In this document: positions 30,270 to 56,734 of the stretch, piece by piece
Layout of the letters: the number at the start of each line of letters is the position of its first letter
Numbering within the stretch: the first letter of the stretch is position 1
Origin: Zancudomyces culisetae HAW-14-8
Taxonomy: Eukaryota > Fungi > Kickxellomycota
Direction of reading: 5' to 3'
NCBI GenBank assembly: GCA_052426225.1
Contig: JBNJNM010000021.1
Coordinates: 3,348,001-3,412,000 of the forward strand
Length of the DNA: 64,000 nt
Notes under the pieces: generated by a model
Databases searched by the model: none
Told to the model about the DNA's origin: nothing
The model's input: the letters and a program-made list of their open reading frames with translations, nothing else
Position numbers and translations under genes: made by a program

Positions 30270-30716
30270 ATGATCAAATCAGTAATCCTCAGCGCCTTGG
30301 TAGTTAGCTCAACCTTTGCTTACAATGCGCAGAATGCACAGAACCAAGATGTACAAGCATCAGGTGAAAACGATATCTTGGAATCCAACTTCAATGAAAT
30401 GGACGACGAGTGCAGACCCAGACGCAGAAGAGTCAGAAAATTGACAGTTGAATTATCTGACTATACTAACTTTAACCGCATTATAGGTACTTTCAAAGCC
30501 AAGCCAAACAAGTGCTATGCAGCTCCCGGATTTGCATCTGCAAGAATGAGTGGAGTGAGTGGAACTAGAGGTGCCATGTTGTTCTGCAATCAGGTTAATT
30601 GTACAGGTAGATGCTTTGTCGCACTTAGAAGCGCAGGAAGCCAAGTTAATAATATTTATGGACAACTTGGTTGTAACCGTGCAACATCTTATTCATGGAT
30701 TTCTCCATACTTTTAA
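30270..30716 (+). CDS. Small secreted Cys-rich protein, crystallin-like family member A
   Basis: Signal peptide MIKSVILSALVVSSTFA; family motif KC-x7-S...G-x4-C-x4-C-x-G-x-C...S-x2-W; A-rich Kozak context. Confidence 0.85.
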   Translation: MIKSVILSALVVSSTFAYNAQNAQNQDVQASGENDILESNFNEMDDECRPRRRRVRKLTVELSDYTNFNRIIGTFKAKPNKCYAAPGFASARMSGVSGTRGAMLFCNQVNCTGRCFVALRSAGSQVNNIYGQLGCNRATSYSWISPYF

Positions 30717-32332
30717 ATTTTGAAGCAATAGCTGCTACCGCTTTTGAATTATGTAGTTTATTAGAATAAGTAGATAAATAAATTACATATATTAATCAAC
30801 TTTTCAATTTAAGTGTGGTTTCCAATATTAACTTGAGATTGGAGTTAGTATGATGTTTTTGAATCAATCGTTTAATTCAAAGTCATTTCAATCAGGAATG
30901 TCTCAATTATCAGACACAATATTGTGTGTATTACTCTATTTATTAATCAAATAGTTTTCTAGATACTCATTTTTTTCGATTAATTTCTAACCATAATAAT
31001 AGGTGGTAACACATAATGTAATAATGAAGTTGTGTTCAAAATCTAATACATAATGACGTGCGAATTAAAAATATCAAATATAGTTTGCTTTAAAATGAAA
31101 AAAGTATATTTAAAATATGATTTAAACTGATAATCTTGTTCTTCAAACTCAATTTCAATTATCTGAGTTAATCGGGCAGAAAATAAGTGTGGATAATTGT
31201 GTTTGCTCATCTATAATAATAAGCATAGTTTCAACCAACCAAATCAATGCTTTTAAGTTCAATATCACAGGATGAAAACGGAAATGATTTACTTGCTGAA
31301 TATGTAGATTTTTGGCTTTTTTCTTAACTAACACGTTTTTCGAGTATAGTGAGTTTTGCAGGAAAATCATAGATAAGCTTCTGGAGGAAAGAGTTAAACC
31401 TTAAGCTTTCTGGAATTATTCGGGATACTAAGACCTCTTGAGCTAAAGAAGTGGCTTCCACATGCAGGTTTCTGAACAAAGTCCTTTTCACCTTGTTACC
31501 TAGCTATGAAAAGCATTAATTGTAGTCCCACTCCCCTTGAACCAATATCCCTCAGGTACCGGGTATTCTAGAGAGTTGGAATGATGATGCGATGAACTTA
31601 GTTTAGTTAATTGTTTTTTTTATGAACTTTTTGATATCTAGATAAATATTACTCAGTCAGAAAAATAAAATTTGACAATATACAATAAAAAAATTTAATT
31701 GTATTGTTATCTATACGTTCCTATTGTTCGTTTGAAGCAAATTTACAATAACTGTATTGTACTTACAGTGCTAGAACGCTTTTCTTTTGTAAAACCTGTA
31801 ATAATATTTGTCCTCAATTCTTTTCTTTTTTTCGGAATGCTTGTTATCATTTTATTTTACTTATTATTTTACTTTTATCATCTGCTCACCTTCTACATAT
31901 TTATACCTCAATTGAAATTTGTCAAATATGTTGGTGTTCGACTGTTTGTACGAGCATGTATTTTACAATTATGTTTAGAACTATTTAGAATTATGACTAG
32001 CTGTTAAACAAAAAAGATCAAAACGTTCTTCATTTCCGTGGCTGTACTATAACCATAATAGTGTTTGTACTAAAAATAACACTTTCACGGTTTGTTATTA
32101 GCGCAATAAACCATCAAGGTGATGTTGTGGTTTATAAAAAATTTCAACTTAGAAGCACTCAAACCCAACTCCTTTACAACAAAAGCATAGTCTAAATTAG
32201 CAATAGTTGTAGTATGTTTAGGATCTTGATACTCTAAAATACAAAAAAAAACTATATAAGAGGAATTAGTTTCTTTACCATTTTATCAGACAAACCTAAC
32301 CCTCAAATTATCAACCACTCAAAAAAAGTAAA

Positions 32333-32938
32333 ATGAAATCATTAACCCTTTCCCTAACCGTATTAGCACTTTCAGCCGGAACCGCTATTGCAGGACGTAG
32401 CGGTGGTCACGGAGGACATCATGGAGGCCGCCACGGTCACGGCCACCGAGGATACAGACACAGACACAGATACTGGAGAAATGGAATCTGGTACGATTAC
32501 CCAGTTGCATACGCAGTAGCAGTACCAGTTACAGTTGGAGCCGTTGGAGCCGTCGGGGCCGTCGGAGCTGTTGGTACTACCTATGGAACTGGTGCAGCCG
32601 TCGCAACAGGATATGATAGTGGAGCTGTTGGTGCAGTTGGTGCTGTTGGCACTGTTGGCACTACATATGATGCTGGTGCCGTTGGAGCAGTTGGAGCTGT
32701 TGGCACTGCTGGCACTGTTGGCACTACATATGATGCTGGTGCCGTTGGAGCAGTTGGAGCTGTCAACACTGCATACGGAGCTGGTGCCGTTGGTGGAGTA
32801 GGAGTTGTTGGTGTAGAAACATACCCATCATACTACCCATTCTATGATGGCTTTTACTTTGATAGATTTGGTAGAAGACACAGATACAGACACGGCCACA
32901 GATGGCGTCACAGACATGGACACGGACACAGACATTAA
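32333..32938 (+). CDS. Secreted low-complexity protein: His/Arg/Gly-rich ends flanking a GAVGAV repeat core
   Basis: Signal peptide MKSLTLSLTVLALSAGTAIA. TATATAA at 32253-32259. Identical 54-bp internal repeats at 32647-32700 and 32710-32763. Confidence 0.85.
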   Translation: MKSLTLSLTVLALSAGTAIAGRSGGHGGHHGGRHGHGHRGYRHRHRYWRNGIWYDYPVAYAVAVPVTVGAVGAVGAVGAVGTTYGTGAAVATGYDSGAVGAVGAVGTVGTTYDAGAVGAVGAVGTAGTVGTTYDAGAVGAVGAVNTAYGAGAVGGVGVVGVETYPSYYPFYDGFYFDRFGRRHRYRHGHRWRHRHGHGHRH

Positions 32939-35300
32939 TACAGACATTGTCACAGAATAGTTCACAGACAAGGTCGTCACTAACCGGAGAAAGTGGTTAT
33001 GATGGTGGTAGCATCCAAGTAATCGACACTGTTTAAATTAGAATTAATGAGTTTTGCTTTTTTTCAATCATATGCTTCCTTCTTTTAGAATGTATGTATA
33101 TATTCGCACAAATAGCAAATAAACGCATTACGAGTTAATAATTTTGTGTACAGGTATTTCATTTACTCGATTTTCCTACAGGGTTTTTTCAATTGCTATA
33201 TTGTTGTGTCGTTTGGAGAAAAGCAGTATTTCTTTTGCTCAGAATGATTTAAATATTACTTTAAACTTTCTGGTACTAAGCGAAGTGTAAATCTTTATCA
33301 CACAAAACCTTCAAGCCTTATCTTTATTAAATCAATATTCAACACTATCAAATTTAGTACAGTAAGATATGGAAATGTTGATTTGTGAACATATCTAATA
33401 TTATTTGATACTAGCTTTATATTCTTCTTTTTCAACCTGCTTCTAAAATAGTTCAATGAATCCACTATTTCAGGTATTCATATATATGAGTTGGTTCGTA
33501 ATAAATATAAATTTAGATAAGGCGAATACTACAATTTTCGTGTAGTTGTCATATCTTTAGAAAAACGAGTGAGATGCAGGGTGTTGTAAAACATTTCCCT
33601 TGGAGTAGTAATTCTTGTGAAGCTTAATTTTATGAGACTAAAAAATACGTTTAGATTGATGTTTTCACAAGCCGAGGTATATAGTTGAATGTTTTGTTTG
33701 AGCAGGTACAATTGACCTTGAAAAGAGTAGATTGATTAACTAGATTAAGAATCTGGAAAAACTAGTAGCAGAAAAACTAGATTGTTCAGTCCGAACAACT
33801 ATGCGTCAAGCTCAAAGTAACAATATTGGCATCGAACCAAGAATATACTGGTATGGGTTCGATTAAAATTACTAGTACTGTTTTTATTTGGTCAAGCTAT
33901 ACTATTTATAGGCGAATATTACCCAAGTAAATATTTTTGAAATTGAAATATATTTAGTCGAATAAAGTTAAAATCTGGTATTGTTATGCAAACACACAGA
34001 TACAATTATGCCCAGCCTAGTTCAAATATTGGGAAAAAAATAGAAAAAATGAATATCGGTTTGTATACAGTTTTTAAACCTGTTTATCCAGTTTTAACAA
34101 CCTAGTATTGCTATGGTAAGATCGTCAAAAAAACGAGTAATTAGTTAAACATTCTATTAGAGACATAAAATGGTACTCACATAGTTGCATTCTGGTAGGT
34201 GAAATTATTCTTAATACTCAAATAAAGATAAAATTTTCATTCATACTTAATTCTGGTTGATCCTAGCAACAGTGTCATCCAGTGTTCTTTTATACAGGGT
34301 ATTCACATCAATACTTCTAACGTTGTAAAACGAGGTCGTGTGATTGTAATCATTCTATGTATTTTTGATCTGATTGCAACTTTTTGCCCAACTTTCTGTA
34401 TTTATACGGTTTCTTACAATGATCAAGTCAGATCAAAAAACCTTGCCTTTTTATTGCCCATAATAATCTGAAAATTGGATCTTGAACATCGAATAATTGG
34501 TGTGAATACATTTTATTGTATTAAATAATATAGAACTATAAGTAGCTAGTGGCGTGTGTATATAGATTTTAGCTACCTCTGCAGACTTTTATCTTTAATT
34601 GAGTGTACCAACGAAATAAACAGATTCGTTTAAACCGGTAATTTTATTAATGTCAACACAGTAGCATATCCAGAATCTGCCCTCTGACTCAAATAAAAAG
34701 CACTTTCTTTTGCAATTAATTTGTCGTAATCTATTGCCTCTTCTCAAGAAGCAGGCCTCAAAAACTAGATATCTATTATCAACAGCTCAATAGTGATAAT
34801 CTAAATATCTGTGTATTCAAAACTGAATACTCATTCTCAGCGGATTCAAAACACAGAGATAACCCATCTGATTTTGACCTGTTTATTAGAAATGCGATCA
34901 TAAGTAGTGGTGCTGGATTTGTTTATCTTTTGTACAAAGATATTCAAAACATGCTAGTGCTACCCACCAAATCCTACTTCAATAGTATTGTCATTGGCTC
35001 TGTAACAAGATCCATCACATGTATATTTTAAATACTATCCAAAGAACATTAACTTAATTATCTCTTTCTCTGGCTAGTACTCATACCTATATTACAAAAA
35101 ATCTACCCAATCACTATAAAAATATTATCATATCCGTTTTTGTATACCATGATCTCCATTTTAACGCAAGTTGAGTTAATTATAAAACGATTTTATTTAA
35201 AACCCATTTCTCAGTTAACGTTTTTTTAAGTTTGTAGCAAAAATTAAAGTACTATGCATTTAATGGCCTATTTGGATGAATGAAATCTATAACCTATAAA

Positions 35301-35761
35301 TTAGGTTCTCCTAACCCTGAGCCAAGCGAATGAAATAGCTCTTCTTCCTACAACTTTGGATATATTGGAAATAGTCTTGGCTGATGATCTACGGACTATC
35401 TGACATTTACCGGTACAATCCTTATCCCCGCAAACCAAGATTACTCCCTTTCCTGGTTTATCCAATCCACTCTTTCTTCCGACCTTGATTGATCCGAATT
35501 TTCTTGTGTTGTAGCACTTTCCACGTCTGATACTGCGCTTTTCGTATCTGTTAACAAAACCGGCAGCCTTGTACAATCTAACAGTTGTTCTCTTGGCCTT
35601 GCAGCGACGATGCATATCGTTGAATTCACAGCCAGAGAGATTGTTGTTGTGTTCGGAATTAGCAAGATCATTGTTCTGATTCTGTTGGTTACCGCTCATG
35701 TTTACTGCACTGGCTAAGGTTGAACCGAGGAGCAAAGACTGACTAATACTGACTTGAACAT
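35301..35761 (-). pseudogene. Crystallin-like family member B with a 1-nt frameshift in the signal peptide (or an assembly error)
   Basis: ATG at 35761 gives MFKSVLVS, matching paralogue A (MIKSVILS). It lies 26 nt from the frame that continues LLLGSTLASA and carries the full family motif. TATA on the minus strand at 35873-35879. Confidence 0.75.
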
Positions 35762-37960
35762 TTTAATTTTGTTTGATTTTCTTTGATTTGATTTGGGTTG
35801 CTCTGATGTATTTGCTTTTTTCCTGGTGGAATGTTTTTGTGTATTTTAAATTATGTGGAGAAAACCATACCCTTATATACTTTTGAGCGAGGTGATATTC
35901 TGATAGTTTACATTGTTTTCACACTAATGTATGGTATAACGAACTCAAATTCTAATAATTTGTATAAACTGTAATATAAAAGTAAAACTCTATTGAAAGA
36001 AGTCCAGTTTATTAAAATTGCAGTCTAGAGTAGTAGCAATATCACAAAGATACCTTTGAACACTTCTATTTTTTGCAATAATACTGCATTCTCGGTCACT
36101 TTTTACTTCTAGTTTATTTGAATAAACCCATCCATAAGTTCAAAAAGTATTTTTTGTTGTTGTTATATGCTATCTTTAGCTGAGCTACACTACTCTAGAC
36201 ATTATGCTAAATTAAAACCATGATGACTGAATGAAAAATCATCAATCGATTTTTTGTACTGGCTAAACACTATCTGGACTTCAAAAAAACCACAAAGTAA
36301 GGAAAACTCCGGTTATAGAATGAGAGTAGTAGTTAATACTCTGGCTCTTTTCCGTTTGGTGGAATCTACTCTTTATAATATAATTTTCAATGTTTTATTC
36401 ATTTTATTATAGCTAGTCTAGAAAGGTGAATTTGTAGATCATTTTTTGTATTAACTTTAAAAAATAAGATAACCTAGCCAGTTTATTTATTAAAAGTCCA
36501 GAGTTACCCTATAAGCAACAGAATGAAATAAGAAGATTTTCGAGAAAATGGAACTAGTACTTCGGTATTCATTTTGGTGGGGTTTCATTTCTACCGCAAT
36601 ATCATTTACTTTGCTATTGTTGGAGACTATAATTCTACTAAAAAAAGAAAGAAAAATAAAAAAAATTAGAAGAGCCGAGATTCGGTTACGTTTAAATGAG
36701 TGCTTTTGAATACTTTGGAGGGGGCAGGGTGCGTGAGAGAGCCTTGGCACTAAGTTGGTTTTTTGTTTAATTAACACTCTTTCATTACGATTATAAACTT
36801 TATTATACTTGATAAATTACATGATGAAGTAGTACTGTTTCTATACCCACTTTTATTTATCCTTGTTTAGTGCTAGTACCAAAAGTATAATTTTTTGTGT
36901 CTATGCATTGTGGTTAAAACAAGTAGAAATAAACACAGAAAACCTAGAAGTTAGAATAGTGCCAAAGAAAGATAGGAAAACAGTCATTGCTCAGATCTAA
37001 CTAGCCAATTCAGTAAATATATTCTTGCCAAGTTTATACTGGATGAGTGTAAAAATAACCTGCTTTCAATGGTAATGAAACGTTGATGAACTCAACCAAC
37101 TACAAAAAACTAAAAAACATACGCCAAAAATTCAGATACATTGAACAAGAAGGATTAGTTACCTAAAATCCAGTAAAAGAAGCGGTCATATATAGATATT
37201 ATACAAAAAGAAATAAGAAATACGTGGATGTGGTTTACAAAATAATTTGAATATTCGTTTTAATAGTAGATGGAGATGATAAGATTGAGAATATACCTCT
37301 GAGTAATATCAATAGTATGTGTGTAATTTTATTAGTTATTAATCGAACCTTCAAAGCTAAAAGTTTTATTTTTATTTAAAACGCTGTCGAATTTCACTTT
37401 TATTAATATCGTTTTTTTTCTTGGCACTTGGTACACTTGAACTTCTGCAAAAGAGATATTTTGCCAAGTACTGAACTTAAAATGTTTATTTAATCTAATT
37501 GATAATGTTCATAAGTAAAACTAGAAAACTAGGCTAAACTAAACATTTTTGTAAAGTCTGTCGTTCTATGTTGGTTTAATCTGTTTTTTATATAGTTTTT
37601 GGATGAAACGGCCATTTTATAACCAAATTATAAATGTAGGAAAAGAATGTATATTTTATGGATGTATTTGTTTATTATCGAAAAATATGAGTCATGTGGA
37701 GACCCAAGGTTTCATTTAATAAATATCCATAACAGATATTATAAATAAGTTCACAATAAATAAGATGAATAAAAACAAAATATGGAGTCTTGAATGAGAC
37801 ATATCATTGATAGACTCAATAAAATAATTGTAAAAAACCAACTGTCAACTTCAAGATTGCCATTGGGATCACATGTCACGACCAGAAAAAAGCCATAGGA
37901 GCCCGAAGTGTAACATGGTTTGGTCACTTTAATCCTGACAGTAAAAGAATATTTATACAG

Positions 37961-38507
37961 ATCTGGGTACACGGAGCAGGAGAGAAACAAGGTTTACAAA
38001 GGGTACTAAAAACAAGACCATGAAGTGTAAACCGGCAAATATCAATGAGATGGTCGGTCAGGCAAAAGAGATTGGAAGCCAACCTATACAAGATCCAGGC
38101 AGTGTTGGCACAGCTCATCAATTCAGTCGATGCCATGGTATATGGAATTAGCCAGTAGGATTTATTTACATTTTATTTGCGATTATTTTAGCGTGCAACA
38201 AATTAATGTCAACATCATATCTTTTAATCTAGTTTACCTAGCACGAATACCTATTAGGTAAATTCTATCATAACAGAATAAAGATTCCGACACACCAATT
38301 TATTATGAAAATTTTCACAATTGAAAATTGTGTTGTTGTGGTTTATTTAGTTCCGACTTTGTCAGCGACTTACCATGCAAACATGCATTCCATCAAAGTT
38401 GTGTGGATTGGTATCTAAATAATGTATCCAAAATGTGTCCAGTTTGCAAGATAGATTTAAAATATGAGGCAAACATGGTAGTAAACCTACAGCATCCAAA
38501 GGTTTAG
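37961..38507 (+). pseudogene. Degenerate RING-H2 E3 ligase gene; 3' exons only, 5' structure uncertain
   Basis: Introns 38138-38232 and 38258-38350 join RCHVYLARIPISSDFVSDLPCKHAFHQSCVDWYLNNVSKMCPVCK. The second zinc-ligand Cys is Tyr (TAC, 38235). No clean upstream frame found. Confidence 0.6.
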
Positions 38508-38868
38508 AAAGTATGTGCTGTCTTTTCTTTTATTTAACTTTGCACGTTTAATACTCCAGAAAACCAGAATCTGAAACCGTTTGATTTTTTTGACTTTTGA
38601 ATCTTTTAGGAATGTAGTTGATTGTTTATATATATTTATATATATGTAGGTTAGATAAATAGGGTTCATGTGTTATTTAGAATTAGAAATACACTACAAT
38701 AGTAGTAAAAATTATGTGATGTAACAAAAAGGTTTTTCCGAAAAAAATATATATAATGTTACACATCTAAAAAGGGAGATAAAAAGATGCAACTCTGGTA
38801 CAATATACATTGAGTCGTCTTTTACTGCCAGTATCGAAATAAGACAATGCTAGATTGTGAATTCTGAG

Positions 38869-39992
38869 CTAGTGTGCTTTTTTTAAAAAAATCAAGCCAA
38901 ACCACGAACTATCTTTGTCCAGCAAGTTACTTAACCGTTCTAATGTCGCCTAAGTATCACAATAAACGGTGCACACCAAAAATTTATTTAAGATACTATA
39001 GGAAATGAATTGAGGAGAACAAAGTATATATGCTTACCTCCCCGCCTCTGTTAATTTATCGATATCACAAGAATCGGTAAAGTAAGAGGCTTCAGTTTCA
39101 TTGAGTACTTCTAAAGGTGAAATTTTTAAAACAGACGAATCACCACTATCTGTGTTCAAGTCGCCTTCTCCTATTGAAGAATCGTTTGTTTTATGAACTA
39201 AGGATTCCATCCCATACTCATAATTATACTCAATACCTGAATCTTTTTGGACTTGACAAAAATCATCATTTGGAGCACAAGTATCTGAAAATGCTTGGTT
39301 ATTCTGGTAATCCAAAAGGTCTTGGGGATCGGAAAAAAATGGTGGAAGAAGGGATATTGCTTTGCATAAAGAAGTGTAGAGCTCATCAACTATTATCGGT
39401 ATTCATTATTTTAGCAATCGAAAGCTCAAACTGTACTTTTCTGCTACTCTGTAAAAAAAAATTAAAATCGACTGACATAAAAAGTGGACTTACGCTTGTT
39501 CAAATCCTGGTGAAAAATAAACAATTCAGAAAATTGAATTTCCTCCTCGAGATTTTGTTCCCAGGAATCATCCGCACTCTCGTTCTCATTTTATGAGCCA
39601 TTTAGACTTTCGACATTTATGTTTTATCTGCTGCCTGAAAGGTGGGAATCCTCTTGAGAAGCATTGTTAACAACAGAGGATGGGAATGAGAGCTCTAGTT
39701 GTAAACAGATGCAATCACCTAAATTATTTTCGTTCTCGAAATCTACTTTATCCTGTTTTAATGATTTTGCGTACAAAGCAATAGAGTCGTAGGCAATGTT
39801 AAATTCAGAGTTTTGAGCATCTGATAAAATAACTAGGTGTGTTGCTGTTATATATACAGAAAGCGGTTCCTTGGCAATTGTAAACGCTGGTCTTATTCGT
39901 ACATCACTTAATGAATGCCTGGGCATGTCGCTTTCATTACTTAGGCTACCTGCTATGAATTCCGGACTATTGTTTAGAATCGTGAATGACAT
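38869..39992 (-). pseudogene. pICln/Lot5-like (methylosome subunit) gene with disrupted frame
   Basis: PH-like N-terminus (VYITATHLVIL...IAYDSIALYA...CICLQLE), LDELYTSLCKAISLLP and LTEAG/ATLERLSNLL. In-frame TAA at 39626-39624 and 39593-39591. The last junction (intron 39037-38950) is 1 nt out of phase. Confidence 0.65.
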
Positions 39993-42267
39993 TTTTCCTT
40001 TCAGTTTTTCACGTTTTGCAGTATTTCTTGCACCAAACTTGAATATTTGACAAGTTGATAATTCGGGGATAAAATAGTTGAACTGAGTGAGTATTTGATG
40101 AGGAAAGCGCTAAGCACAATTAAAAATGGTTGATGGAACCTTTCTAGCTTTGATAGCTCACTTTTAAATTAAACAAAATTAAGCAAGGAATCCCACTAGC
40201 TTTGCCAAATCTCGATAAAATAACGAATCAAAGTTTATTTAAATTAGTTAGACTGCTTTTCATTTTTCCAAGAAAAAATAATTAAGGCTAACAACTCTGA
40301 GAAACGGCGAGTATAGGTTAGTGCTCTTAATCTCGACAGCTTTTACTAGATTTTAAATATGCACTTTAGGTAATACGAGCAACTTTTTGTCTGCTTGGTT
40401 GACAGCTTTAGCATTTATTGAAAGAAGCACCAAAGATATATACCACGTTGTTAACATTTGGTTTTTATAATAAACTCCAATCTAATTAGTGATAGCAAAT
40501 AGGGTAAAATGGTTTGATAAATTAATTCTTAATATTTTGTTTATATGCTTTAGCTTTGATAATAGGAATCTAGAACTAAATAAAAACTATGAAATTAGAA
40601 AAGATTAGTTAATGAAATATTATTTAGCATGTTTGAAACTGAGCTACAAACGAATCAGTTGTGTTATTCATATTCGACCTGTGATGATTTTTGAGACTAG
40701 CCCTTTTTCTTTGTAGTTTATTTTTTACAATCGATTATTGCATATTTTGGAAAGGCGTTTTGCCAATCTGTGTATCGTTCACTTCTCAGTTTCGACTTAG
40801 GTTATGAAAATTTTGACATTCTCTCAACCCTTTGTGACGCCTTTTTTATTATTTCTTGCAAAAAAATAACTTGTAGATGATTCTAACAAATCACAAAACC
40901 ATTTTTGGTCTCATTAAATCCGGCTCTAAATCCTTTTAATTTTACAATCTATCTAATAAATGTTTTTTGATAATTACTAGACTTTATATCACACCATTCT
41001 TTTATAAAAAAAAGCTAAAGATATTAAAACCTGATAATAATAACTATTTTTTCAATAGTAGAGACCTCGTCGGTCTCAGCAGCCTTTAAACGACATGAAT
41101 TATCAGCTAGAATGAAAATTCTGAAACATGAGCTGTCAAGCTTCAGCTGTGCCACAAGGGTAATGGAACCTGTCCAAAACGATTGATGAACTGATAAATT
41201 ATAATTAAATTCACAATGTAGCTTTTTCAGAACTACTGTTTCAATTATCCTAATTTAGGTGGTAAGCAGCAAGTTGAAAAACCAAGAGTACAAAAGTTTT
41301 TAGATTGTTCTTTTTTAAACTTTATTAGCCAATTTTGATTTGTAGGTTATTTACAGGGGGGAGAGCAAGAAAAATTATGGAAGCTATATTGCTTAGTCTT
41401 TATTTGGTAAATTAACTGTAATCATTTACCTCCTACTTTACTTGCCCTTTTTCTTGGAGGAAAAATGATAATAATTTATACAATTATCCTAAACAGGAAT
41501 AAAATTATCTAATTTAAAAAATTCAAGTAATTTTTGGATTTCGAACACCATAAATAATTACTATCTTTTAACATCACATTACATGCCAGTTTATATGAAT
41601 TAATTTTTCACATTTTCACATATTTTTCTCGTAAATATGATTAAATCATGGGATTTACTACTTGATATCACCTTTACATTCGGATCTGTAGAAATTGGTA
41701 TAACAAAAAATTAGTAGTAGGTAACTTTACAATAACGACAATTATATAATGTAGTAATGTTAAATATATATTACTTGATAAAATATTACTAGATTTAATT
41801 AAATACAGGGAATTTTGGAAATGAAATTTTTTTTCATATGTTCTTAATTTTACTTTTCTTGATTAGTGGTGATAATTAACTAAAAACATAATTTAATGAG
41901 GTATTAGCTAATGTATAAAAAAAATAAAGCAAGTTAGAATCTAAACAGATTAAAGATTATATACTATAACCCCCCTTAAGCTGCCATTTGAAGGAATGGG
42001 GAAAGGGAATACATCAGCAAATTCCATTTGAGTAGCTGATTTAAACGAACCGCTGATGATACTAGTAAATAGAAAAAATCAAATTTAAGTAAAGTAAAAA
42101 ATAGTATAAAAGCAATATAATAAGGAAATTATCAAGTTTACATTTCCAATAAAAGGTATCCTACTATCTCTAGGCTTCAAACAAGGGACATTCTTTTAAA
42201 TTTAATAAATTATTTTTTTTTTAAAAAACTTTCTAGTAGGTATATAGACAACAGCAATCAAAGAGGA

Positions 42268-43947
42268 ATGGAAATATCAGTTCTGGGGTTGAGTTTCTAC
42301 GTACACGACTATATTCTGAGTGTATTATTTTCAATACAGTTTGTTGACGACCTTGTGTTGTTTGTAACTGAGAGCGAATACAGACACATACTGGCAAATC
42401 TTATTTACATACCATTATTGGCATCCAATATAAAATGGCTATTAAAATACATCGTCTCGGATCAATGGCTACAAGAAATACTGGTTTTTATTAAGAACGT
42501 GGTTTTACTTTATTTATGTTGTTACCAAATATCGGGAAAAATTCGGAAAACAGTAAAGGAACTAGCTGTGCCCTATGGTTTAAAAAAGGTAAAATGCATG
42601 GAGGCTGGTATTAGCCGTAATTCTTCTAAGGAATACAAAGGCGAACGTAAGGTTTATGGGAAGCACATGAACCAAAGTCTGTGTATAGTTAATTCGGAGC
42701 AAGGAAGAAGTATTTTGATTGGTGGAAGGTTTTCGTCAGAATATGTAAAGCATCCAGAGACGATATTCAATAAAAATCGGGCTTTCCTAAAAAATCACCA
42801 CAAATAAACAATATTAGCCAGAGGAATGCACGTTAATGACATTCTATACAGCAGATACTTGTTACATTTTCTGTCATATGTTGATTTGAAGGAATCGATG
42901 GAAGCAATCCAACCGACCCTGGAACAAGTAATCAGGAGAGAGATTATATCCTCTGGAAGCATGTATAATGGAAATGAGGTAGTGGTTAACAACTTGTATG
43001 AGACAGTAAAAAGTATGGTTAGATTTGCTATAATATTTAGATTTTTAGGCCCATATGCAATAAGAGACAGAAATTTGGTTGAAAGTTTGAAAAAAGTGAC
43101 GAAGCCGACCAGGCTTGGAAACGTAAATAATCAAGAGTTTTTTTCAACACTATTTACTGCGGGGTATTTGGGCAATAACTACTTTTATGAGTATTTTGAA
43201 CTTGAGTCGAGCCGCAGAAAATACCTTCCCGAATATAGTAAACCAACTGATATAATACAATTTTTTACAGACAATTTTAGCATTTTCCAAGCGGAGCTAA
43301 CGAGTGTAGCGTATTGTATACAGACAATTGTAGCGGTTGGTGTGGAGGTGGCATCAAGGCGGATATTCAACCTATTAGTAGAACTTAGTTTAAGGCCTGA
43401 CGTCTACAAAGAGTTGCTGCAGGAACAAAATGAGCTTATTGAAAAGAATGGTGATAAAAACCATATTCCATTTGAAATGTTGGACGAAATGGTGTACTTG
43501 GATGCGTTCATTAAAGAAACGATCAGGCTTTCGGGATCGGATCCATTCATGCCCCGTTGTACGACTCAGGAAGTAGTGATGTCTAATGGCGTGAGTATTT
43601 CTAAACATCAATATGTGAGTTTTAACATTCAGGGACATAATAGGGATCCCGAAATATTTGGACCAAATGCGAATGAATTCGACTACAAGCGACACATTCG
43701 TCTTGGGCTGAAACTAACAGATGCTTCGTTGGCTAATTTAATGTGGGGTGCTGGAAATCGGGTCTGTCTAGCAAGAATATATGCAGCTGCGCTTATGAAG
43801 CTGATGTTGGCGATGATAATTAGAAAATACGAGGTGCATGCCAATTACTCTATTAAAAGAAATGAACACGGACAACCCGCATTCTCTCACTATACATCCC
43901 TTAGCGATTTTTGCATAAACAAGGGGTTGTACTTTAAGATTTGTTAA
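42268..43947 (+). pseudogene. Cytochrome P450 interrupted by one in-frame TAA (42805-42807)
   Basis: The two listed ORFs share a frame. N-terminal TM segments, ExxR (KETIR) and heme motif WGAGNRVCLA. The nearest GT..AG pair (42745-42817) does not restore the frame. Confidence 0.8.
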
Positions 43948-46280
43948 TAATTTAGAGTATTACATATTGTTTTGTTGCTTTGGTCAATAGTTAATTAAAT
44001 AAAGTGAAGATAATAATGTTTATAAACGTTCCAAAAAATAAAAGCAATACATAAAAGAGAAAAGTTGAAACATAACATTAGCATTATACCCTTGATTAGG
44101 TTTTGATAATACACAGTATTGCTATAGTATTTGACAAAAAACACTCTTGATGTGCCTGAGGGTTTACTTTAGCTAAACACTAATGTATATAGTCGAGTCA
44201 AATGAAAACCTATTATTTTTTATGCGAACATCCAAATATCAATATTCTCATAAATACTCATTATAGCTTAATCAAATTATTATCAGTAACTCAGGAATCA
44301 AAAATCAATATATATACGGCTTAAGATTATTTTATTTAGTTAGGCTAATTTTTTATAAAACTGTATTTTTTTGTCTGTCATTTCATACATCATATGAATA
44401 AAGATTCTAAAGTTTAATTCGTTTATTATCGATTTGTTGTTCTATCTATTTAAACGAGTATCTAGATAGAAATATTCTATATATAATAAGGAATGTAGAC
44501 GTATAATTGTACTGGTTGTTTGTATAAATATCAAAGATATTTCTATTTAGAGCATTAAAACTCACTAATCTAGTATTAATAGTTAAATTTTATAAATGAA
44601 AATAACATCAATGCACACTTACAGATCTAAAAGTTTAAAATTAAAGTTCTAATCATATGTTGGTTGTAAACTTAGTAATGAGTAAAATATAGTTTGCAAA
44701 TAGTTATTTTCCAAATACATAAAATGCATTTCTCAAATCTTACTAATTTCTTTTGTGGTTTGACATACAAACACTCGTTTAATCTACTCTGATTACTTTT
44801 ATGATTAATTAAAGATGTTTTTTGAAATAAACTGGTATAAATATAAATATTCAATTGTTTACTGTTTATTCCTTATGAGATATAAAACAGAAAAATATAG
44901 TAGATAGATTACTGAATTCAAATTTAGCTATCACTCAACAAGAAATAATTATTTTTCACTTACTTGGCGGTATGAGAGTGTGAGAAATAAATCTAGTATA
45001 ATATGAAAAAGCTATAGAATAGAACATTTCATTAATTATTTTTTAACTATAATCATAAAATTAGTAAACTATCCTTTCAGTGTTAACACGACATAAACGA
45101 TAGGTGGATTGAGTAAACATTTAACTTTGGCTATTCCGAACAGTTTTTGATAGTCACACCAATCATCTTAATAATCGGATGTACCAATCAAGTATAAACT
45201 TTAGTTTCTATAAAACATGAAAAACCATATTATGAAAACAAATTAAAATATAGAATCATTTTGAAATGCACCAGCGTATTCGTATCTCCAACTTTTAATT
45301 TTTCTTACTAACCATAGTTACAAACTTTTATAAGTTCTTTTTTGAAAAACTGTGCACAACTATAGGTTTTATAGACAAATCACATACAAAAAGCAGTAAA
45401 TTATAAAAGTTGCTATTGTGACTAGATCATGTTCCGTTGATCCTCTTTACTTTAGAACTCAAAAGAATAAAAATTGAATATTTTCCTGCAAACTCAGCAA
45501 TTGCGATAGCCAAAAATTATACAAAGCAGATAATATTAACACATAGGTTTAATTAAACTTTCCTGTTAAGACATGTACACTGTTTGGCTGCCACACAGTC
45601 TAGGACGGTGATCTACTATTTAAAATTGATCTACATTTTCATACCACTAGGAACAATGAAATCCTAGTTATACCATTTATATTCCTCAGCGTATAAATTT
45701 TTAATGCCAAACCAATAGAATTTTAGCCTATTTTTGAGCTACTATTACTACAAGTTCAGAAATGTAACTCCTCATTAAAATATCCTAATATCTCTCATTC
45801 TCGACTTGGCCAAGAAATTTCAAATTGGATTAACGAAATTGTTCACCTTGAGATGTTAGTATTTAGTGGAATTTTATAGCACTGGTTCAGGGGCTATTTC
45901 AACTATTTTACTGGACTTTTTATTAATACTGTACTTTTATTATTGATTTTTCAGTCTCATCTTTAGATCTAGTATTTTTTGCTTATTCATAATTAAATTA
46001 ATTATTAGAGTAAACAAACGTATTTCTTAAATATTGAAATATGAATACTAGATTCTCAGGCTCGCTCAGATTTATGTCCTTACTTTAGCTATTTTTCATG
46101 TAAAACAGTATGTTTTTAATCAAGTAATTTAAATAAGATTTTTACGACGACCGGTTTGTGTATAGTTTCAAAAAAGTATAAATAGCGATAATACTGCTTA
46201 AAGTTTAAATCCATAATAAATAAACAAGACAAGACCAAAATAACCGCAAAGTTCATTCCTGAAAAAGAAAACCTCTAAAA

Positions 46281-46685
46281 ATGCGCGTTTCAAGTTATAC
46301 ATTGGCCATCCAGCTTCTGTCAGCTACTCAAACCCTGCTAGTATCAGGTCATTGCCATCATCACCATCATCACCATCATGGGTCCTCTCGACCAACCTTA
46401 TACGTTAAAGTATTCTCAGGCTACCGCTTTTCAGGAGATGTAATAAACGACTTCCAGATGAGAAAACACAAGTGTTATAACATTGAGCAGGACACCTCAG
46501 CGCAATTTCTTAATCCCACGGATAGGTCAGGAGGAATGTTAGTATGCAGAGAAAACGACTGTAGAGGTGTGTGTACAGTAAATACCAGGTTTTTACAAAC
46601 TGGTATGTGGAATTTCCCAGAAGATCTCAAGTCTGGTCCACTTTCAATTAAATGGGTGTCAATGGGTACTGCCCCCAACGAGTGA
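46281..46685 (+). CDS. Small secreted Cys-rich protein, crystallin-like family member C, with a His8 tract
   Basis: Signal peptide, HCHHHHHHHH, full family motif. AAAAAG-TATAAATA at 46171-46184. Confidence 0.85.
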   Translation: MRVSSYTLAIQLLSATQTLLVSGHCHHHHHHHHGSSRPTLYVKVFSGYRFSGDVINDFQMRKHKCYNIEQDTSAQFLNPTDRSGGMLVCRENDCRGVCTVNTRFLQTGMWNFPEDLKSGPLSIKWVSMGTAPNE

Positions 46686-47288: not shown

Positions 47289-47705
47289 TTAGTAGTAGTA
47301 TCCACCGTAGTATGGGTAGTTGTAACCGTAACCGTAACCGTAACCATACGATGGATATCCGTAGTATCCGCCGTAGTATGGGTATCCATAGTATCCGTAC
47401 CACCAACGGTCATCGGTTCCATTTCCTGCATCACCACCTTCTACTGAAGGATCAACAATTTGAGCAGAATCATCGTCAGCTGGTGCAACTTCCTCCTCCT
47501 CGTCAGCACGCTTGCGGTAGGCTGGAGCGGCAAAGCGGTTGTTAAATGCAGGGCGAGATGGTGGAGCATATCTTCCAAAGTCCTGGACCTGTCCCATTGG
47601 TGGTTGCATAGGTCCGACATTTGCTCTTGGTCTTGGAGCGGATGCAGCATTTACTGATACTGTGGCAACTGCGGCTGTGAGGAGTGCGAGTGTTGACTTT
47701 ACCAT
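47289..47705 (-). CDS. Secreted precursor with a KR site, acidic spacer and Tyr/Gly-rich C-terminus
   Basis: Signal peptide MVKSTLALLTAAVATVSVNA, then YRKR|ADEEEE. The last 38 aa contain 20 Tyr and 11 Gly. TATA on the minus strand at 47856-47862. Confidence 0.85.
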   Translation of the reverse strand: MVKSTLALLTAAVATVSVNAASAPRPRANVGPMQPPMGQVQDFGRYAPPSRPAFNNRFAAPAYRKRADEEEEVAPADDDSAQIVDPSVEGGDAGNGTDDRWWYGYYGYPYYGGYYGYPSYGYGYGYGYNYPYYGGYYY

Positions 47706-49700: not shown

Positions 49701-49949
49701 ATTGTGCCCAGCACGATCCGGGTACACTCATAAAGTACTTTCAAGCTCTTAAGTCTACAAAAATAATAAAAAAATAAGCTAATGAACTCTACCTTTGATA
49801 ATTAGCCGAGATGCAACACAATAGTCCAGTCAAAGGGAAAACCAACAGCGCAACAGTATGACATTTATATATTATTTGCTCAAGAGGTAGTTGCCATTAT
49901 ATCATAGTAATATACTAATACCCGTAATATAAATAACTTTTAATAATAG

Positions 49950-50409: not shown

Positions 50410-51842
50410 TTTTTTTGGCGCCATTATGGTATTATGAATAGCTTACCCTGATATTAATATATAACTTTTTAATAATATCCCACAGAAAACAGACAGAAAA
50501 CAGACAGAAAAGCGCAGATTATTAGAAAAATTTATTAAAAACCTGTGGTGCTACTTTACTACCTATAATTCAGTTATAAAAAATGAATAATGTGTCTAAA
50601 TGCTTATCTATTCTTCACCATTCGCTCATATGTATCCTCAAAAGGTGATAAAATTTATATTTTCCGCTAAGCCTCGTACTTATAAAGAAAAGTAGCACAT
50701 CTTCATAATGCTTGCTTGTAATTTTTTAAACAAATTTATTTACTTTATGTACTGATAATATTATCAAGTGTTATGGCTAGGTTTATTATAGTTCTATCTA
50801 GTCTAAAATGTATTTACTAAAAGTGTCCTTGTTGAATGTAGTTCACTTTACAAATAATCACCTGGTAACTCTCACCGTCGTAACTAGGCGCAGTACTGGA
50901 TAACGTTCAAGAGTTATTCTTCAAGTTACGATTAGTTTTCTTTATTTTTTAATGCTCAAACCTTAATCTATTCAAAATATTAAGATTATTATTATTATAT
51001 GATAATATTGTAAAGTGTCTTTCTTATTTTTATTTTTTTTCTCGGTCTGTTTGAAAACGAAGGGTAATTTAACCCTTGTAAAAGTTGGGGTCCGGTTTCA
51101 TATAAATTAAATGACTTAATCGACTCGATTCTGAAAAAGCCTGACGCCCGTTTCAAACTCACCCCGGCAGGTTTACATTTGAATTTGAGATAACCCCTAA
51201 TCACATTACGCGACTACAAAATCTAGATTCCTGAATTAATTAACGATAACCATATTTGTACTTGTATAAAATGAAGATATTAAATTCGCTAGAAATTAGT
51301 GAGCTGACATATTATCTCATAGGTTACCTCACATGATTGATAAAAATGTACAAAAGCCTTATATTTATATTCTGGGCAGACCTCTGGAAGTGCAAATAAG
51401 CATAAGTCGGATCTGCTTTAATTTAAAAGACAAATGCTTTATTTAAACGTTTTTGTTTTGCAAACTAATTAAACTGTAACCTAGAGTTTAAGTCCACTGT
51501 AATTAATTAATTAATTTTTAGTATATTAAACACCGAAAATTGTAAGTCGAGGCTAGCGTTCAAAATTAAATTTAGCGTATTGGTTATCATTTTTGAATTT
51601 AGAAAAGTATATTAACTTGTAGCTCAAAGTTTACATTCTAGAAACGTGTAGGTATAATGCAACAATAAGCCCATTACAATATTATACAAAGTGAAGTGGC
51701 GTTTTGTATAAGTAAGATATTTCATGAGAAATAAAAGTATAAAAGGGGTTACAATTCCCTTCAAGTTGTAGAATACATATCACGAGTAGAATAAACAATT
51801 CACTTATTAGACGAAAAAATCTTTCAAAAGTTAATCAAAAAA

Positions 51843-52253
51843 ATGAAGTTCTCCGTATTCAGCATGATGTGCTTGAGCCTGGGTATGACCAGTGCATACA
51901 GCATCGCAGATTCAAATCAAGCTGCCAAAAACAAACAAGCAGACAACAGTCCCAACCGCCTTTGCGGTTGTCATCATCAAAAAAAAATGAAGCTTGAGAT
52001 TTTCAGTAAAACCCATTATCAAGGGAAAAGTCAAATCAAACATTTGAAACCAGGTCGCTGCTATAACATTCCAAGTACCGGAAGTGCAAAAATGGACGAT
52101 GGTAAACCAGGAAGTGGAGATATTACGTTTTGTGTAGAGGCAGACTGTCAAGGGCACTGCTTTACCGCATCTAGAAGCATTCTACTTTATCCAGATAATA
52201 TCCCAGGAATTGATCTTGGTGCTTATGCAAAATCAGTAGGATGGACTCTCTAG
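51843..52253 (+). CDS. Small secreted Cys-rich protein, crystallin-like family member D
   Basis: Signal peptide, PNRLCGC, LEIFSKTHYQG and the full family motif. AAAAG-TATAAAA at 51733-51744. Confidence 0.87.
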   Translation: MKFSVFSMMCLSLGMTSAYSIADSNQAAKNKQADNSPNRLCGCHHQKKMKLEIFSKTHYQGKSQIKHLKPGRCYNIPSTGSAKMDDGKPGSGDITFCVEADCQGHCFTASRSILLYPDNIPGIDLGAYAKSVGWTL

Positions 52254-52585
52254 TGGGTATTTTAGAACTATTTGAAAAGGTTTTACTAGTTAGTATATAG
52301 AAGTTTCAATACCTAAACTGGATTTGACACTTGCTCTATAGATATTTATTAATTTAAATATTGCAAGTGGAAATAAACTATTTTACTGCTATAAGTTCAA
52401 ATGTACAAGCTGGTGCTTTAAATAATCTATATATATCAAAGTTTTTTTAATTCTGACTTTTCTAGTATGCCGATCTTATTAAAGATAATCTACATATATG
52501 GGGAATAAAAGTTTGCATTTTAACCAAATAATTAATCAAGAGATTGAACTTGAAAGCATTAATTGGATTAAATCATGTTATTAGT

Positions 52586-53705
52586 TGTTATGAATACACT
52601 TGTATCACAACAGTATTGTATATTAAAAACATAAAAATTAATGTTTATTAATGATAATCTTGTATATCATTAATATTATTTAATTATAAGTTTATATATT
52701 TAATTATTATTATATTTTTAGTTTTAAACATTTTATAGTGCATATTAATGATGTTCGCTTAATAGTATATTATAATTGGTTTTATTACTAGTTTAAGTTT
52801 TATATTAATATTTATAACAAACTTAATTGTATAAAAGGTGATTCATTTCCTTTCATGAACAATTAAGTTTGTCAATCTCGTTTAACAATAATAAAGATAT
52901 TATTAACAAATATTATATTATTACTGTGTGTTTTAAACTAGTATAATTAATAATAACTTTTATAAATTAACTGTGTGTTAATTTGTTAATACCATCATTA
53001 TTGTGTATAATATTGGTATCTAACACTGCTTGACCGTGCGAGAATGCGCATTAAAGGGTATTCAGAACCCTTCCTTGATCACCTGGAGTACTCATTGGTG
53101 ATCGGTAAGCTTCTTCCATGCCTCCTGGAAGAGCTTCAGTCAACCCCTTACTTTCGGGGTCTGATGCTGCAACCACCCCGAAAATTATTCTTAGGAGTAT
53201 TAAAATGGGGCTGCCACTGCCCATGAACCAGGTGTGGCTCTTGGAGCTGTGACTGCTGTGTTAGATACCGAAATTATACTAAGTAAAGATATTATTAACA
53301 AATTAACACACAGTTAATTTATAAAAGCTATTATTAATAATTAGTATAAAACTCGCAGTAATACATGCAATAATATTTTTATTAACTTTATTGTCGTTAA
53401 ACGTGATATACAAACAAATTTTACATGTAAAGGTATATTATCTCATTTTATTCAATTAAGTTTGAAATAATTATTAATATATAATTTAAACTAAAAAACA
53501 TATTTAATTTAAAAAATATTAATGTTGATTCGTTCATTATTGATTTTGAGTATCAATCTAATGTTTTAAACTGATACTTATTATTAAATAAATAATATAA
53601 TCTTGTAATATAAAAATATTTGAAACACAAGTATATCATTAATATAAATTAATTTTATTGTATTTAATATACAATATTGTTAAGATACATGTATATTCTA
53701 AAACA
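52586..53705. mobile_element. Inverted pair of about 440-bp LTR-like arms (52586-53025, 53259-53705) enclosing a DIRS-like fragment
   Basis: The arms are reverse complements along their length, including a 45-bp block with one mismatch. Each starts TGTTA and ends AACA. The minus-strand spacer reads VRG*LKLFQEAWKKLTDHQ*VLQVIKEGF*IPF, like the start of DIRS pol. Confidence 0.75.
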
Positions 53706-56326
53706 ATGGTGGTGGTGGTGGTCATGGCCTACATTTTTGGCGGGGCCAAAATATTCGCCTATACTTTTGCCTATCTAGTGCCTACACTTTCGATCGCGAT
53801 GACGGTGGCAGTAAGGTCTGCATACTTTACGACGACGACATTGAGATCTACAAATCCTGCATTATTGTTTGAAAGGTAGACGTTCTTTGGGGCTAGTTCA
53901 CCTTTTTTTTTACATACCTTGTATTTGGCTAAGTTGGCCGTGTGGAGGTTAGTTTAACCTTTCATTTTTAATTATTTTAATTATTATTTTTAGTACACTA
54001 CCATTATGTGAAAAAAGTTTTTTAAAGATTTCTATTTGGCTGGCTCCGCTATCTTGAGATTGAGCGGAAACTGAAAAGAGTGCAATAAGGCACAACTATT
54101 TGATTATAACCATCCTGTACTATTCTCTGGCTCTTTATTCCGTGTTAATTTTGTTTGTATAACCGAGCTCCTACAACTGCGTGACTAGCTAACTAGAAAA
54201 AACACAACGAATTGCTGTTAGATCTTGGCTGCCAGTACCTCTAAGTTTTTTAATTTGTATTCCTGTGCCTGAAGTTTTATTATGACATATAACACTACCA
54301 TATTTTATTACTGCTTCTTGCTTGTTAGCTATCTGAGAGTGCAAAAAAATGATACTAAACTAAATCACGGTATTTTTGACATTTTTATATTTTTGTTAGA
54401 TGGAATTTTAAATACATATTTTCTACAATATACAGCTCGCTTGTGGATAGTTGAGTTTAGTTGACCTTCTCTCTGATATTTACTTTTAACGTGAGTATTC
54501 CAGTTTTATTTTACTAATAAATAATTATTAAACTATGTACACTTTCTTTTATTTAACATTCTAGATCTTTTATAAACGTCATTTATGTTTATTAAAAGTT
54601 ACAATCAAATATACATATTAAGAACTAGATCAAAAAAAAGTTAATTTATCGCACTGACAGGGATTTTATTTTAGTTCTAGCTAAAGTCATTAATATATTA
54701 AAATTGAGCCCGATAAACTTAGCAAACCTGAACTTGATAATTTACTAGAGCCTAAAGAATATATTTGAATGTTAACTTTTATTAGAGGTAATGTGAGGTA
54801 GTAATCATCTAGATCAATCACAATATTTACGATACTACAGCTATTGGTTTGGTGGTTATTTATTGAAATGTATGATCTCACACTCTCGCACTATTTGTTC
54901 ATAAAAAGGTCACCTTTAATTTTTTTTGATAGAAATGTATAGTAAAAGCGTATAGGTGTTGAGATTTTAGAGTTTCGGAGATCATGAAGTTGGGCTGAAA
55001 AGATTTGTAAATATAACATGCCCGAGACTTGCCCTAAAAATTCTCACATTTTTTATGGCTTCATGAACGGAAGTTGACATATTTTTCCATATTTTTAAAC
55101 AAGATTCTCGCTATCTTTATTGGGTAATATTCTTTTTGTTTTATTTAATGCTTTACAAGTCAAGGACAACTATAATTTGATATTTTGTTTAGCTTTTAAA
55201 TTCATAATAATATACTTTGATAAGTTGATAATAGTCCAGATTGTGCTAATAACTTTTTAACAAGTCAAGAATAACATTAATAAATAGTTGAAAATATATT
55301 TTTATTCTCATACACCCAAGCTACAAAGTTGATGTAATAAGCCTTTAGCGTTTTTCAAAACTTTCAAGCATACAACACTTTTTCTAAACATTTTTTATAA
55401 ACAGGTATTTATTTTTATCCTTGTAACATTTTGAATTAAAGCTAATATGTTACATCCATAATTTAAAACCATATTTTAGAATAATTACACTTTAAACATT
55501 ACCAATTATACAAAAAAACTGTATCATTTATGAATGTATCGAAGGATATGACTATTTTTAAAATCAATAAAAAGAGAATAAAGTAAGTGACTCTACATTT
55601 GGTAAACAAAAAACACTTTATAAATAGATAATTAAAATATGCCAAATAAAATAGTAGTTTAAAAAGTCATGAATAGATGCCATCAGAATATGTATCATTC
55701 TTATCATTGTAAAACTAAGTATCGCAGAAATATGATACTATAATTGTTTCTGATTATTTACGCAGTGATAATTGTTTAAACTTCATCAAATTAAACATAT
55801 TAAACTTGATATATTAAATAGCTTTACAAAAATTGCACGGAAAATCACATGTTAGTGAAAGAGATACATGTATTCTCGCACCGTTAGACAATTCTTTTAA
55901 TTCTCAAATTATTCATATTACGGGTATTTACTTATATGACATAATTATGTGTCACATCTTTACCTCTTTAATTAGCACTGAAAACTATATTATAAGCTTG
56001 AGAAGATAAATGCTGAACATATTTATCAATCTATATTAAAAAATTCAGTGTGATAATATATGTCAGACGGAATCCTTACACCTTTTATGAATATACATTC
56101 TTTTAAACTGTAAAATCTACTGGCTGTTAAATAATGCCTGGTCATACCCGATTTGAAATTTATTCATAGTAAAACCACTTTTCAACTCTGCTCCAAACAT
56201 TATCATTTAATGTTGACGAACTTCACTGCACATTTTTATTCATGGATTTTGGCTCTAATATTTAAAAGATTTTCTATCTCTAAATCAAATATCCATACAT
56301 TAAAAATAGTCGAATATTGACTCTAA

Positions 56327-56734
56327 CTATGCTAGGAACCAAATCATAGAGTTTGCAGGTCCTCCAACATTGTCAGCTTCCACATCATATGGGTAAAGCC
56401 AGGCTTTTCTACTTATAGTTGTACACTTTCCACTACAGTCATTACTGTGGCATAGTGCAGCCCATCCGCGCCCTGGTTGTCCATCGTCAAATCGAAGTGA
56501 TAGGGCACTTGGTAATGAGACACATCTGTTTGGTCTTATATTTAGGGTTTCACCTGGACTTTGGAGATTTTTCTCTTTGAACACTTCGACCTTCATTCTA
56601 GCACTGCGATTTCGACAAGAACAAAGTCTGTTTGGTCCAATTGGGTATCTATTGTGTTGGCGTAAAGACAAGTCACCCATGCTGTTTGCAAAGGTTAGTC
56701 CCAAAGCTGCAGTTCCGATTATAATGGTCTTCAT
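56327..56734 (-). CDS. Small secreted Cys-rich protein, crystallin-like family member E
   Basis: Signal peptide, PNRLCSC and the full family motif. AAAAAAG-TATATAAA on the minus strand at 56818-56832. Confidence 0.87.
   Translation of the reverse strand: MKTIIIGTAALGLTFANSMGDLSLRQHNRYPIGPNRLCSCRNRSARMKVEVFKEKNLQSPGETLNIRPNRCVSLPSALSLRFDDGQPGRGWAALCHSNDCSGKCTTISRKAWLYPYDVEADNVGGPANSMIWFLA

Follow-up and report, generated by a model that had tools for sequence, protein, structure and literature searches.

What are the small, cysteine-rich proteins encoded toward one end of a contig of the gut fungus Zancudomyces culisetae, and what might they do in the larval gut? The question is raised by a 64,000-nucleotide stretch of strain HAW-14-8 (GenBank assembly GCA_052426225.1, contig JBNJNM010000021.1, forward-strand positions 3,348,001 to 3,412,000; hereafter the window). 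It contains five genes, designated A to E in their order along the window, which an earlier reading of the sequence alone had grouped as a secreted protein family with a beta/gamma-crystallin-like signature. The analysis below describes this family as a Harpellales-specific set of predicted secreted proteins, each built around a single domain of predicted crystallin fold and encoded at 150 or more loci, most of them subtelomeric. We hold this structural and genomic description with high confidence. The description joined to a killer-toxin-like or antimicrobial function is put forward tentatively, as a combination somewhat easier to doubt than to accept.

Predicted fold, sequence signature, and processing

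The five window proteins share 10 invariant alignment columns, and the others are 21-29% identical to A. Each nevertheless matches the joint profile of the five with an expectation value (E) of 1e-47 to 1e-60, and the same profile matches 150 further places in the genome; the resemblance is therefore not due to chance. The residue spacing that the sequence-only reading had picked out, K/R-C-x7-S followed by G-x4-C-x4-C-x-G-x-C and a terminal S-x2-W, is exact and lies among the invariant columns of all five proteins.

Members D and A, which share 28% identity, were modeled with AlphaFold2 using family alignments of 42 and 60 sequences, respectively. In both models, the N-terminal 45-55 residues are disordered and the domain contains seven to eight strands. 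Predicted local distance difference test (pLDDT) scores exceed 90 over residues 49-136 of D and 58-146 of A, with block means of approximately 90-98. When the model of D was compared with the PDB using Foldseek, the top 50 matches were all proteins with beta/gamma-crystallin domains (E of approximately 1e-3 to 1e-2, probability 1.00), and template modeling (TM) scores on single-domain targets were 0.64-0.71. In VIA-align, which is independent of Foldseek, superfamily members filled the first 20 ranks for D and almost all of the first 22 for A. These superfamily matches cover the whole domain (Z scores of 7-9.2 and a root-mean-square deviation of 2.2-3.1 Å over 76-83 residues), compared with Z scores of approximately 4 for unrelated structures. 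They include beta-B2 and beta-B3 crystallin, gamma-S crystallin, the Ciona crystallin, spherulin 3a, geodin, IPSE/alpha-1, Protein S, and Neurospora APP. The proposal of two crystallin-type Greek keys, for which structure prediction had been suggested as a check, is thus matched by models that resemble the crystallin superfamily almost exclusively. The comparison with the Williopsis killer toxin WmKT and Streptomyces SKLP also holds at the level of fold, as both are among the matches, although they are weaker than true crystallins: Z scores for D and A, respectively, were 7.3 and 6.2 with the plant protein MiAMP1, 6.0 and 6.2 with WmKT, and 4.6 and 4.2 with SKLP. We consider the crystallin-fold assignment sound for a prediction. 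On the same models, common ancestry with crystallins is plausible; sequence statistics do not show it. Searches of Pfam with the five window proteins and 42 members at E≤10 returned scattered chance hits and none from the crystallin clan, PF00030 included, in keeping with the earlier statement that this is not a named family.

Conservation of the signature was counted over 42 non-redundant members. The aromatic pair of the first Greek key consists of F/Y at position 54 (41 of 42) and Y/F at position 59 (28 of 42), and the canonical form of this motif, aromatic-x4-Y-x-G, is kept in the Smittium and Furculomyces relatives. In the second Greek key, C-x4-C-x-G replaces the aromatic pair. C97 and C102 are present in every member and G104 in 41, consistent with the suggestion that this element echoes the [FY]-x4-[FY]-x-G pattern of the first. 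The conserved Ser that follows each crystallin motif, at the start of strand d, is also found, as S81 in 34 of 42 members and as S131 in all 42; W134 is likewise invariant. Domains carry four to six Cys in total, and because four of these are invariant, two disulfides are expected from the alignment. The loops are the most variable parts of the domain. Canonical and microbial beta/gamma-crystallins, the best structural matches, share with the family the aromatic hairpin and conserved Ser of the first motif. They differ in that the family has Cys-Cys for the aromatic pair in the second motif, an invariant S-x2-W at the last strand, no match to PF00030, no calcium motif (N/D-N/D-x-x-S/T-S in 0 of 39 non-redundant domains scanned), and a domain that stands alone, preceded by a signal peptide and pro-region.

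The same 39 members were scanned for N-terminal, basic-site, and C-terminal tail features. The N-terminus is hydrophobic in every full-length member sampled, with a median hydropathy peak of 2.4. The linker that follows is variable. It is N/Q-rich, includes tandem acidic repeats in some members and His runs in others, such as C, and carries a small conserved motif, either FN-E/D-M or PNRLC-x-C. Just before the first strand, K or R is found at position -1 in 67% of members and at each of positions -2 and -4 in 56%. A dibasic pair falls within the last seven pre-domain residues of 23 of 39 members, compared with backgrounds of 0.7% of windows in the remaining linker and 9% in the domain. Each gene would accordingly encode a prepro-protein comprising a signal peptide, a low-complexity pro-region or linker, and a single C-terminal domain of 88-102 amino acids. 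We infer that a Kex2-type protease of the secretory pathway would cut most members at the basic site, freeing a compact and mostly basic domain of that length. The isoelectric points (pI) of the mature domains lie mostly at 8-11.8, with a few near neutral and a full range of 5.8-11.8. The description of B as extremely basic fits its type, given that B-type domains have a pI of 11.0-11.8 and a net charge of +19 to +23. N-glycan sequons occur in 17 of 39 members and are uninformative.

Copy number, subtelomeric location, and selection

A profile built from the five genes was searched against the 27.1-Mb genome, yielding 207 candidates, of which 150 scored at E≤3e-16. The family, earlier described as having five members, is that size in the window; genome-wide it has at least 150 loci, a lower bound on copy number, and the 207 candidates are equivalent to approximately 2% of the 8,484 annotated genes. 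Locus positions were tallied from the match coordinates of this search. Within 50 kb of a contig end lie 80 of the 150 loci (53%), and within 100 kb, 98 of 150; the two sets of end zones account for roughly 5-9% and 10-18% of the genome, respectively. At all five contig ends that were read, (TTAGGG)n or its complement extends for at least 400 bases: both ends of C21 (the contig containing the window), the starts of C11 and C8, and the end of C7 (L071-L075). Being made of this repeat, the five ends are true telomeres, and C21 appears to be assembled telomere to telomere. The window genes lie 28-55 kb from its right telomere.

Duplication of the region is widespread. The order and spacing of B-C-D-E are repeated near the ends of C7, C14, C11, and C13, and 4-7.5-kb pieces of the region recur at 90-96% identity near the ends of C21, C11, C23, C8, C9, C6, and C10. 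Copies with a profile score equal to that of D are found at four other contig ends, and copies equal to E at four other loci. Subtelomeric segmental duplication would in this manner multiply and reshuffle the copies. The family also builds chromosome-internal arrays, as indicated by groups away from the telomeres at C6:1.04-1.24 Mb, C11:1.13-2.04 Mb, and C14:75-232 kb. These internal members are B-like proteins of 175-193 amino acids with longer linkers made of tandem acidic repeats of the 'ADSEYNND' type. Separately, parts of window positions 38275-44528 occur at 86-96% identity both near contig ends and internally (C21:2.43 Mb, C19:115 kb, C7:0.80 Mb, and C15:0.23 Mb). The segment could represent a mobile element, or a gene block that was duplicated and dispersed, inside the cluster.

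A maximum-likelihood tree of 40 non-redundant members placed A, B, C, D, and E each in a separate well-supported clade. Member A belongs to a starred clade with L015, L016, and L031, and C groups with L054 (support 100/100). Because each gene falls in its own clade, the window contains one member from each of five old clades, carried in duplicated subtelomeric pieces. Of the two subfamilies proposed from sequence, that of D and E is recovered as a superclade with 99/99 support. The A/B pairing does not form an exclusive clade; the signal peptide and FN-x-M motif on which it was based are widespread in the family.

Selection was estimated by the Nei-Gojobori method as the pairwise ratio of nonsynonymous to synonymous substitution rates (dN/dS) over the domain. 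For the 89 pairs compared, the median was 0.56, with close pairs at 0.1-0.75. The ratio was below 1 in 81 pairs, and the genes are thus maintained under constraint; all eight pairs with a ratio above 1 are distantly related (dS above 0.6), and their values are unreliable. Rates also differ along the protein. In the A-type clade, dN of the mature domain is two to five times that of the signal and pro part, and in the B-type clade the reverse applies, with dN of the signal and pro part exceeding that of the mature domain. Mature-domain dN above prepro dN is a pattern of toxin and antimicrobial-peptide families.

The profile was further searched against 1.84 billion representative proteins, giving 32 matches at E≤0.001, of which 20 were looked up. 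Seventeen were from Z. culisetae, one from Smittium mucronatum, one from Furculomyces boomerangus/Harpellales, and one from a mollusc; no ascomycete protein was returned by this search. The mollusc protein (Nucella, P0035, E of 3e-4) was judged unrelated, as it consists of a different repeated unit and matches the profile only in part. All family records looked up are annotated as 'hypothetical' only. Based on these 20 of the 32 sequence matches, the known range of the family is limited to Harpellales, with a strong expansion in Z. culisetae. Departures from the single-domain layout were seen in P0009 of S. mucronatum, which has three tandem crystallin-fold domains in 296 amino acids, and in P0033 of Z. 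culisetae, where a single domain follows an approximately 200-amino-acid stalk rich in Ser, Thr, Ala, Val, and Pro and has Ser or Leu at two of the four Cys positions.

Candidate functions of the family

Highly multiplied proteins of crystallin fold that are predicted to be soluble, processed, basic, and disulfide-bonded, in a fungus living in a crowded gut, would fit the role of secreted extracellular binders. Their targets would be cell-surface or cell-wall components of competing gut microbes, making the proteins killer-toxin-like or antimicrobial. We tentatively take this to be the most likely role, while giving it rather less than an even chance. It is ranked first because the nearest analogues of the same layout, HM-1 and MiAMP1, are antimicrobial and because Z. 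culisetae colonization is reported to make the bacterial community of mosquitoes less diverse (PMC7393158), which is circumstantial evidence only.

HM-1, also called WmKT (PDB 1WKT), is a toxin of the fungus Cyberlindnera (Williopsis) mrakii. It acts on sensitive yeasts, which die because beta-1,3-glucan synthesis is blocked. As is predicted for members of the family, HM-1 is secreted, basic, and disulfide-bonded, and has a single beta/gamma-crystallin-like domain. Its 125-amino-acid precursor matures to an 88-amino-acid single-domain toxin (PMC12715866). The family shows a comparable prepro layout, with the basic site enriched at the junction (dibasic in 23 of 39) and cleavage there inferred. 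The two are without sequence similarity in the PDB sequence search at E≤10, and HM-1 is encoded by one chromosomal gene (hmk), in contrast to the family with at least 150 mostly subtelomeric copies. They differ also in cysteine content: HM-1 has ten Cys, and the family has four that are invariant among four to six. For Streptomyces SKLP (1F53), the likeness is structural only (Z scores of 4.2-4.6). MiAMP1 from Macadamia (PDB 1C01) is an antimicrobial protein of 76 amino acids that is likewise basic, disulfide-bonded, and secreted, with a single Greek-key/crystallin-like domain; its match to D and A extends over 76 aligned residues. It is, however, a plant protein with a different Cys pattern and no sequence similarity to the family.

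A second group of comparable proteins consists of the gamma-crystallin-like candidate effectors of ascomycete plant pathogens, namely the 18 members of Magnaporthe oryzae 'cluster 14' and Ecp4, Ecp7, Ecp29, and Ecp30 of Cladosporium fulvum (PMC9447291). These too are small, secreted, lineage-specific, and sequence-divergent proteins with a predicted gamma-crystallin-like fold (PMC9447291). The present family differs in coming from another phylum (Zoopagomycota) and from an insect-gut commensal instead of plant pathogens, in its approximately tenfold copy number and telomere linkage, in the C-x4-C-x-G of its second Greek key, and in lacking any ascomycete profile match. Secreted Cys-rich gamma-crystallin-like proteins of fungi are thus a kind already known, from the candidate effectors (PMC9447291) and from the yeast toxin HM-1. 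What is new is a sequence family that has no Pfam model, its phylum and lifestyle, the Cys-Cys second Greek key, and the size and telomere-linked organization of the family. None of the papers found on Z. culisetae and Harpellales genomes refers to crystallins, and the 2025 Z. culisetae assembly paper (PMC12611240) is silent on secreted proteins, effectors, and gene families.

Several results weigh against the chain of argument from crystallin fold to killer-toxin-like or antimicrobial function. At the level of sequence, neither Pfam nor PDB sequences connect the family with crystallins, killer toxins, or antimicrobial proteins; in the PDB search, two family profiles and the three-domain Smittium protein found none at E≤10, 1WKT included. 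The Gly of the first Greek key, at position 61, is present in only 8 of 42 members. True crystallins (Z scores of 8-9) outscore both WmKT (approximately 6) and SKLP (approximately 4.5), so that the fold in itself is no specific indication of a toxin. No dibasic site was found in 16 of 39 members, so not every member need be processed. Gene-wide, dN/dS over the 89 pairs shows nothing that suggests an arms race; the family had been called diversifying, which is not shown at the gene level, with only 8 pairs above 1. Among subtelomerically amplified families, moreover, adhesins and variant surface proteins are more familiar examples than toxins.

This last point leads to an alternative in which the proteins act at the host interface, binding larval hindgut cuticle, peritrophic matrix, host glycans, or host proteins and thereby aiding attachment or modulating the host. 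We regard it as doubtful, albeit with an appreciable share of the probability. Its models are DdCAD-1, which mediates cell adhesion, and schistosome IPSE/alpha-1, which binds host proteins. Both are among the fold matches of D and A (Z scores of 6.2/5.6 and 8.3/7.1, respectively), as is the mucin-glycan-binding X409/StcE module (5.7), and the stalk of P0033 would be in line with such a role. Subtelomeric families of other fungi are often adhesins, and a subtelomeric repertoire would suit a wide host range. According to the assembly paper (PMC12611240), Z. culisetae lives attached in the guts of several dipteran groups. The architecture of the members speaks against this alternative: a glycosylphosphatidylinositol (GPI)-like hydrophobic tail was found in 0 of 39, the five window proteins included, and no member except P0033 has a stalk. 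Members therefore look soluble, not wall-anchored, and the calcium-binding motif of the DdCAD-1 type is likewise absent from all 39. A structural or stress role in spores or the cell wall encounters the same absence. Such a role, modeled on Myxococcus Protein S, Physarum spherulin 3a, and the Neurospora abundant perithecial protein (APP), draws on some of the best fold matches (Z scores of 8.5/7.5 for spherulin 3a, 7.8-8.0 for Protein S, and 7.4-7.5 for APP). These proteins, however, bind Ca2+ through N/D-N/D-x-x-S/T-S motifs, which occur in 0 of 39 members, and a structural role does not account for at least 150 divergent copies or for charge varying from pI 5.8 to 11.8. We consider it improbable.

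Protease inhibitors that shield the fungus from digestive or microbial proteases of the gut, comparable to the crystallin-fold Streptomyces inhibitor SMPI (MEROPS I36), would be another use of the fold, and one to which we assign a similarly small likelihood. A compact disulfide-bonded beta domain would suit a protease-rich habitat, and a language-model feature search placed the PF03995 Inhibitor_I36 and PF00030 Crystall clusters among the nearest named neighbors (scores of 0.84-0.89), which serve as leads only. Yet even at E≤10, PF03995 matched none of the 42 members, and the 50 best structural matches do not include SMPI. Nor does any loop stand out as a conserved, exposed reactive site, the loops being the least conserved parts of the domain. 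Finally, the genes could be largely silent passengers, open reading frames (ORFs) amplified along with subtelomeric blocks, few of them expressed or needed. The copies do move in duplicated blocks, B and its twin L003 are broken (see below), and stops interrupt the match at 8 of 150 loci. At the other 142 loci the match has no stop, and all 42 divergent members share the same four Cys, one Ser, and one Trp. Together with the dN/dS of close pairs (0.1-0.75), this invariance indicates selection on the protein, making the passenger explanation highly improbable.

Returning to a killer-toxin-like or antimicrobial role, a bolder form of it would make the family the main interaction arsenal of a gut symbiont: a repertoire of crystallin-fold killer or antimicrobial proteins that is linked to telomeres and recombines, perhaps with only a subset expressed at once, and that shapes the gut microbiota of mosquito larvae. 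We think this unlikely. If true, it would explain the drop in bacterial diversity after Z. culisetae colonization and would give the early-diverging fungi their first toxin or antimicrobial family with the organization of contingency or variant genes. The broader interest of the family depends less on its exact role. Harpellales are obligate gut symbionts of the larvae of disease vectors, and the molecules they use in the gut are almost uncharted; the family is a first candidate for a large secreted interaction repertoire in this group. It extends the theme of secreted crystallin-fold proteins, represented by HM-1, MiAMP1, and the ascomycete effectors, to Zoopagomycota, with a Greek-key hairpin in which Cys replaces the aromatic residues. 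Should the proteins act on microbes, they would offer a starting point for understanding how the mosquito microbiome is altered by a gut fungus.

The five window genes and their neighbors

Four of the five genes proposed from sequence, A, C, D, and E, are intact ORFs; B, for which a 153-amino-acid product had been claimed, is frameshifted. Member A (30270..30716, forward strand) encodes 148 amino acids, in which a signal peptide, an N/Q-rich pro-region with an FNEM motif, and an RRRRVRK basic site precede the crystallin-fold domain (residues 58-148, approximately 30441-30713). Member C (46281..46685, forward strand; 134 amino acids) has a run of eight His between signal peptide and domain and no dibasic site. 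The related members D and E have similar layouts. In D (51843..52253, forward strand; 136 amino acids), the signal peptide is followed by a PNRLCGC motif, a QKK site, and the domain (residues 49-136, 51987-52250), and in E (56327..56734, reverse strand; 135 amino acids), by a PNRLCSC motif, an RSAR site, and the domain.

Member B (35301..35761, reverse strand) is of the very basic type, and its reading frame is broken in the signal peptide. From the ATG at 35761, translation meets a stop after 15 codons, and the family ORF resumes in a different frame, continuing to 35301. Compared with four intact 153-amino-acid paralogues (L004, L005, L011, and L012), one base is missing in codon 9, between 35738 and 35737. 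The same one-base loss is present in L003, a copy near the opposite end of C21, which indicates a real, inherited mutation. The next in-frame ATG is at 35699, and a product initiated there would have no signal peptide. From its sequence, B is probably a pseudogene.

Other ORFs are interspersed with the family genes. Between A and B, a 201-amino-acid ORF (32333-32938, forward strand) has a signal-peptide-like start and His/Arg/Gly-rich ends flanking a long core of Gly/Ala/Val repeat units; by composition, it appears to encode another secreted low-complexity protein. Between C and D, a 138-amino-acid ORF (47289-47705, reverse strand) combines a signal-peptide-like start with an acidic middle and a very Gly/Tyr-rich C-terminus. 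Two neighboring ORFs of 179 and 373 amino acids occupy 42268-43947 on the forward strand.

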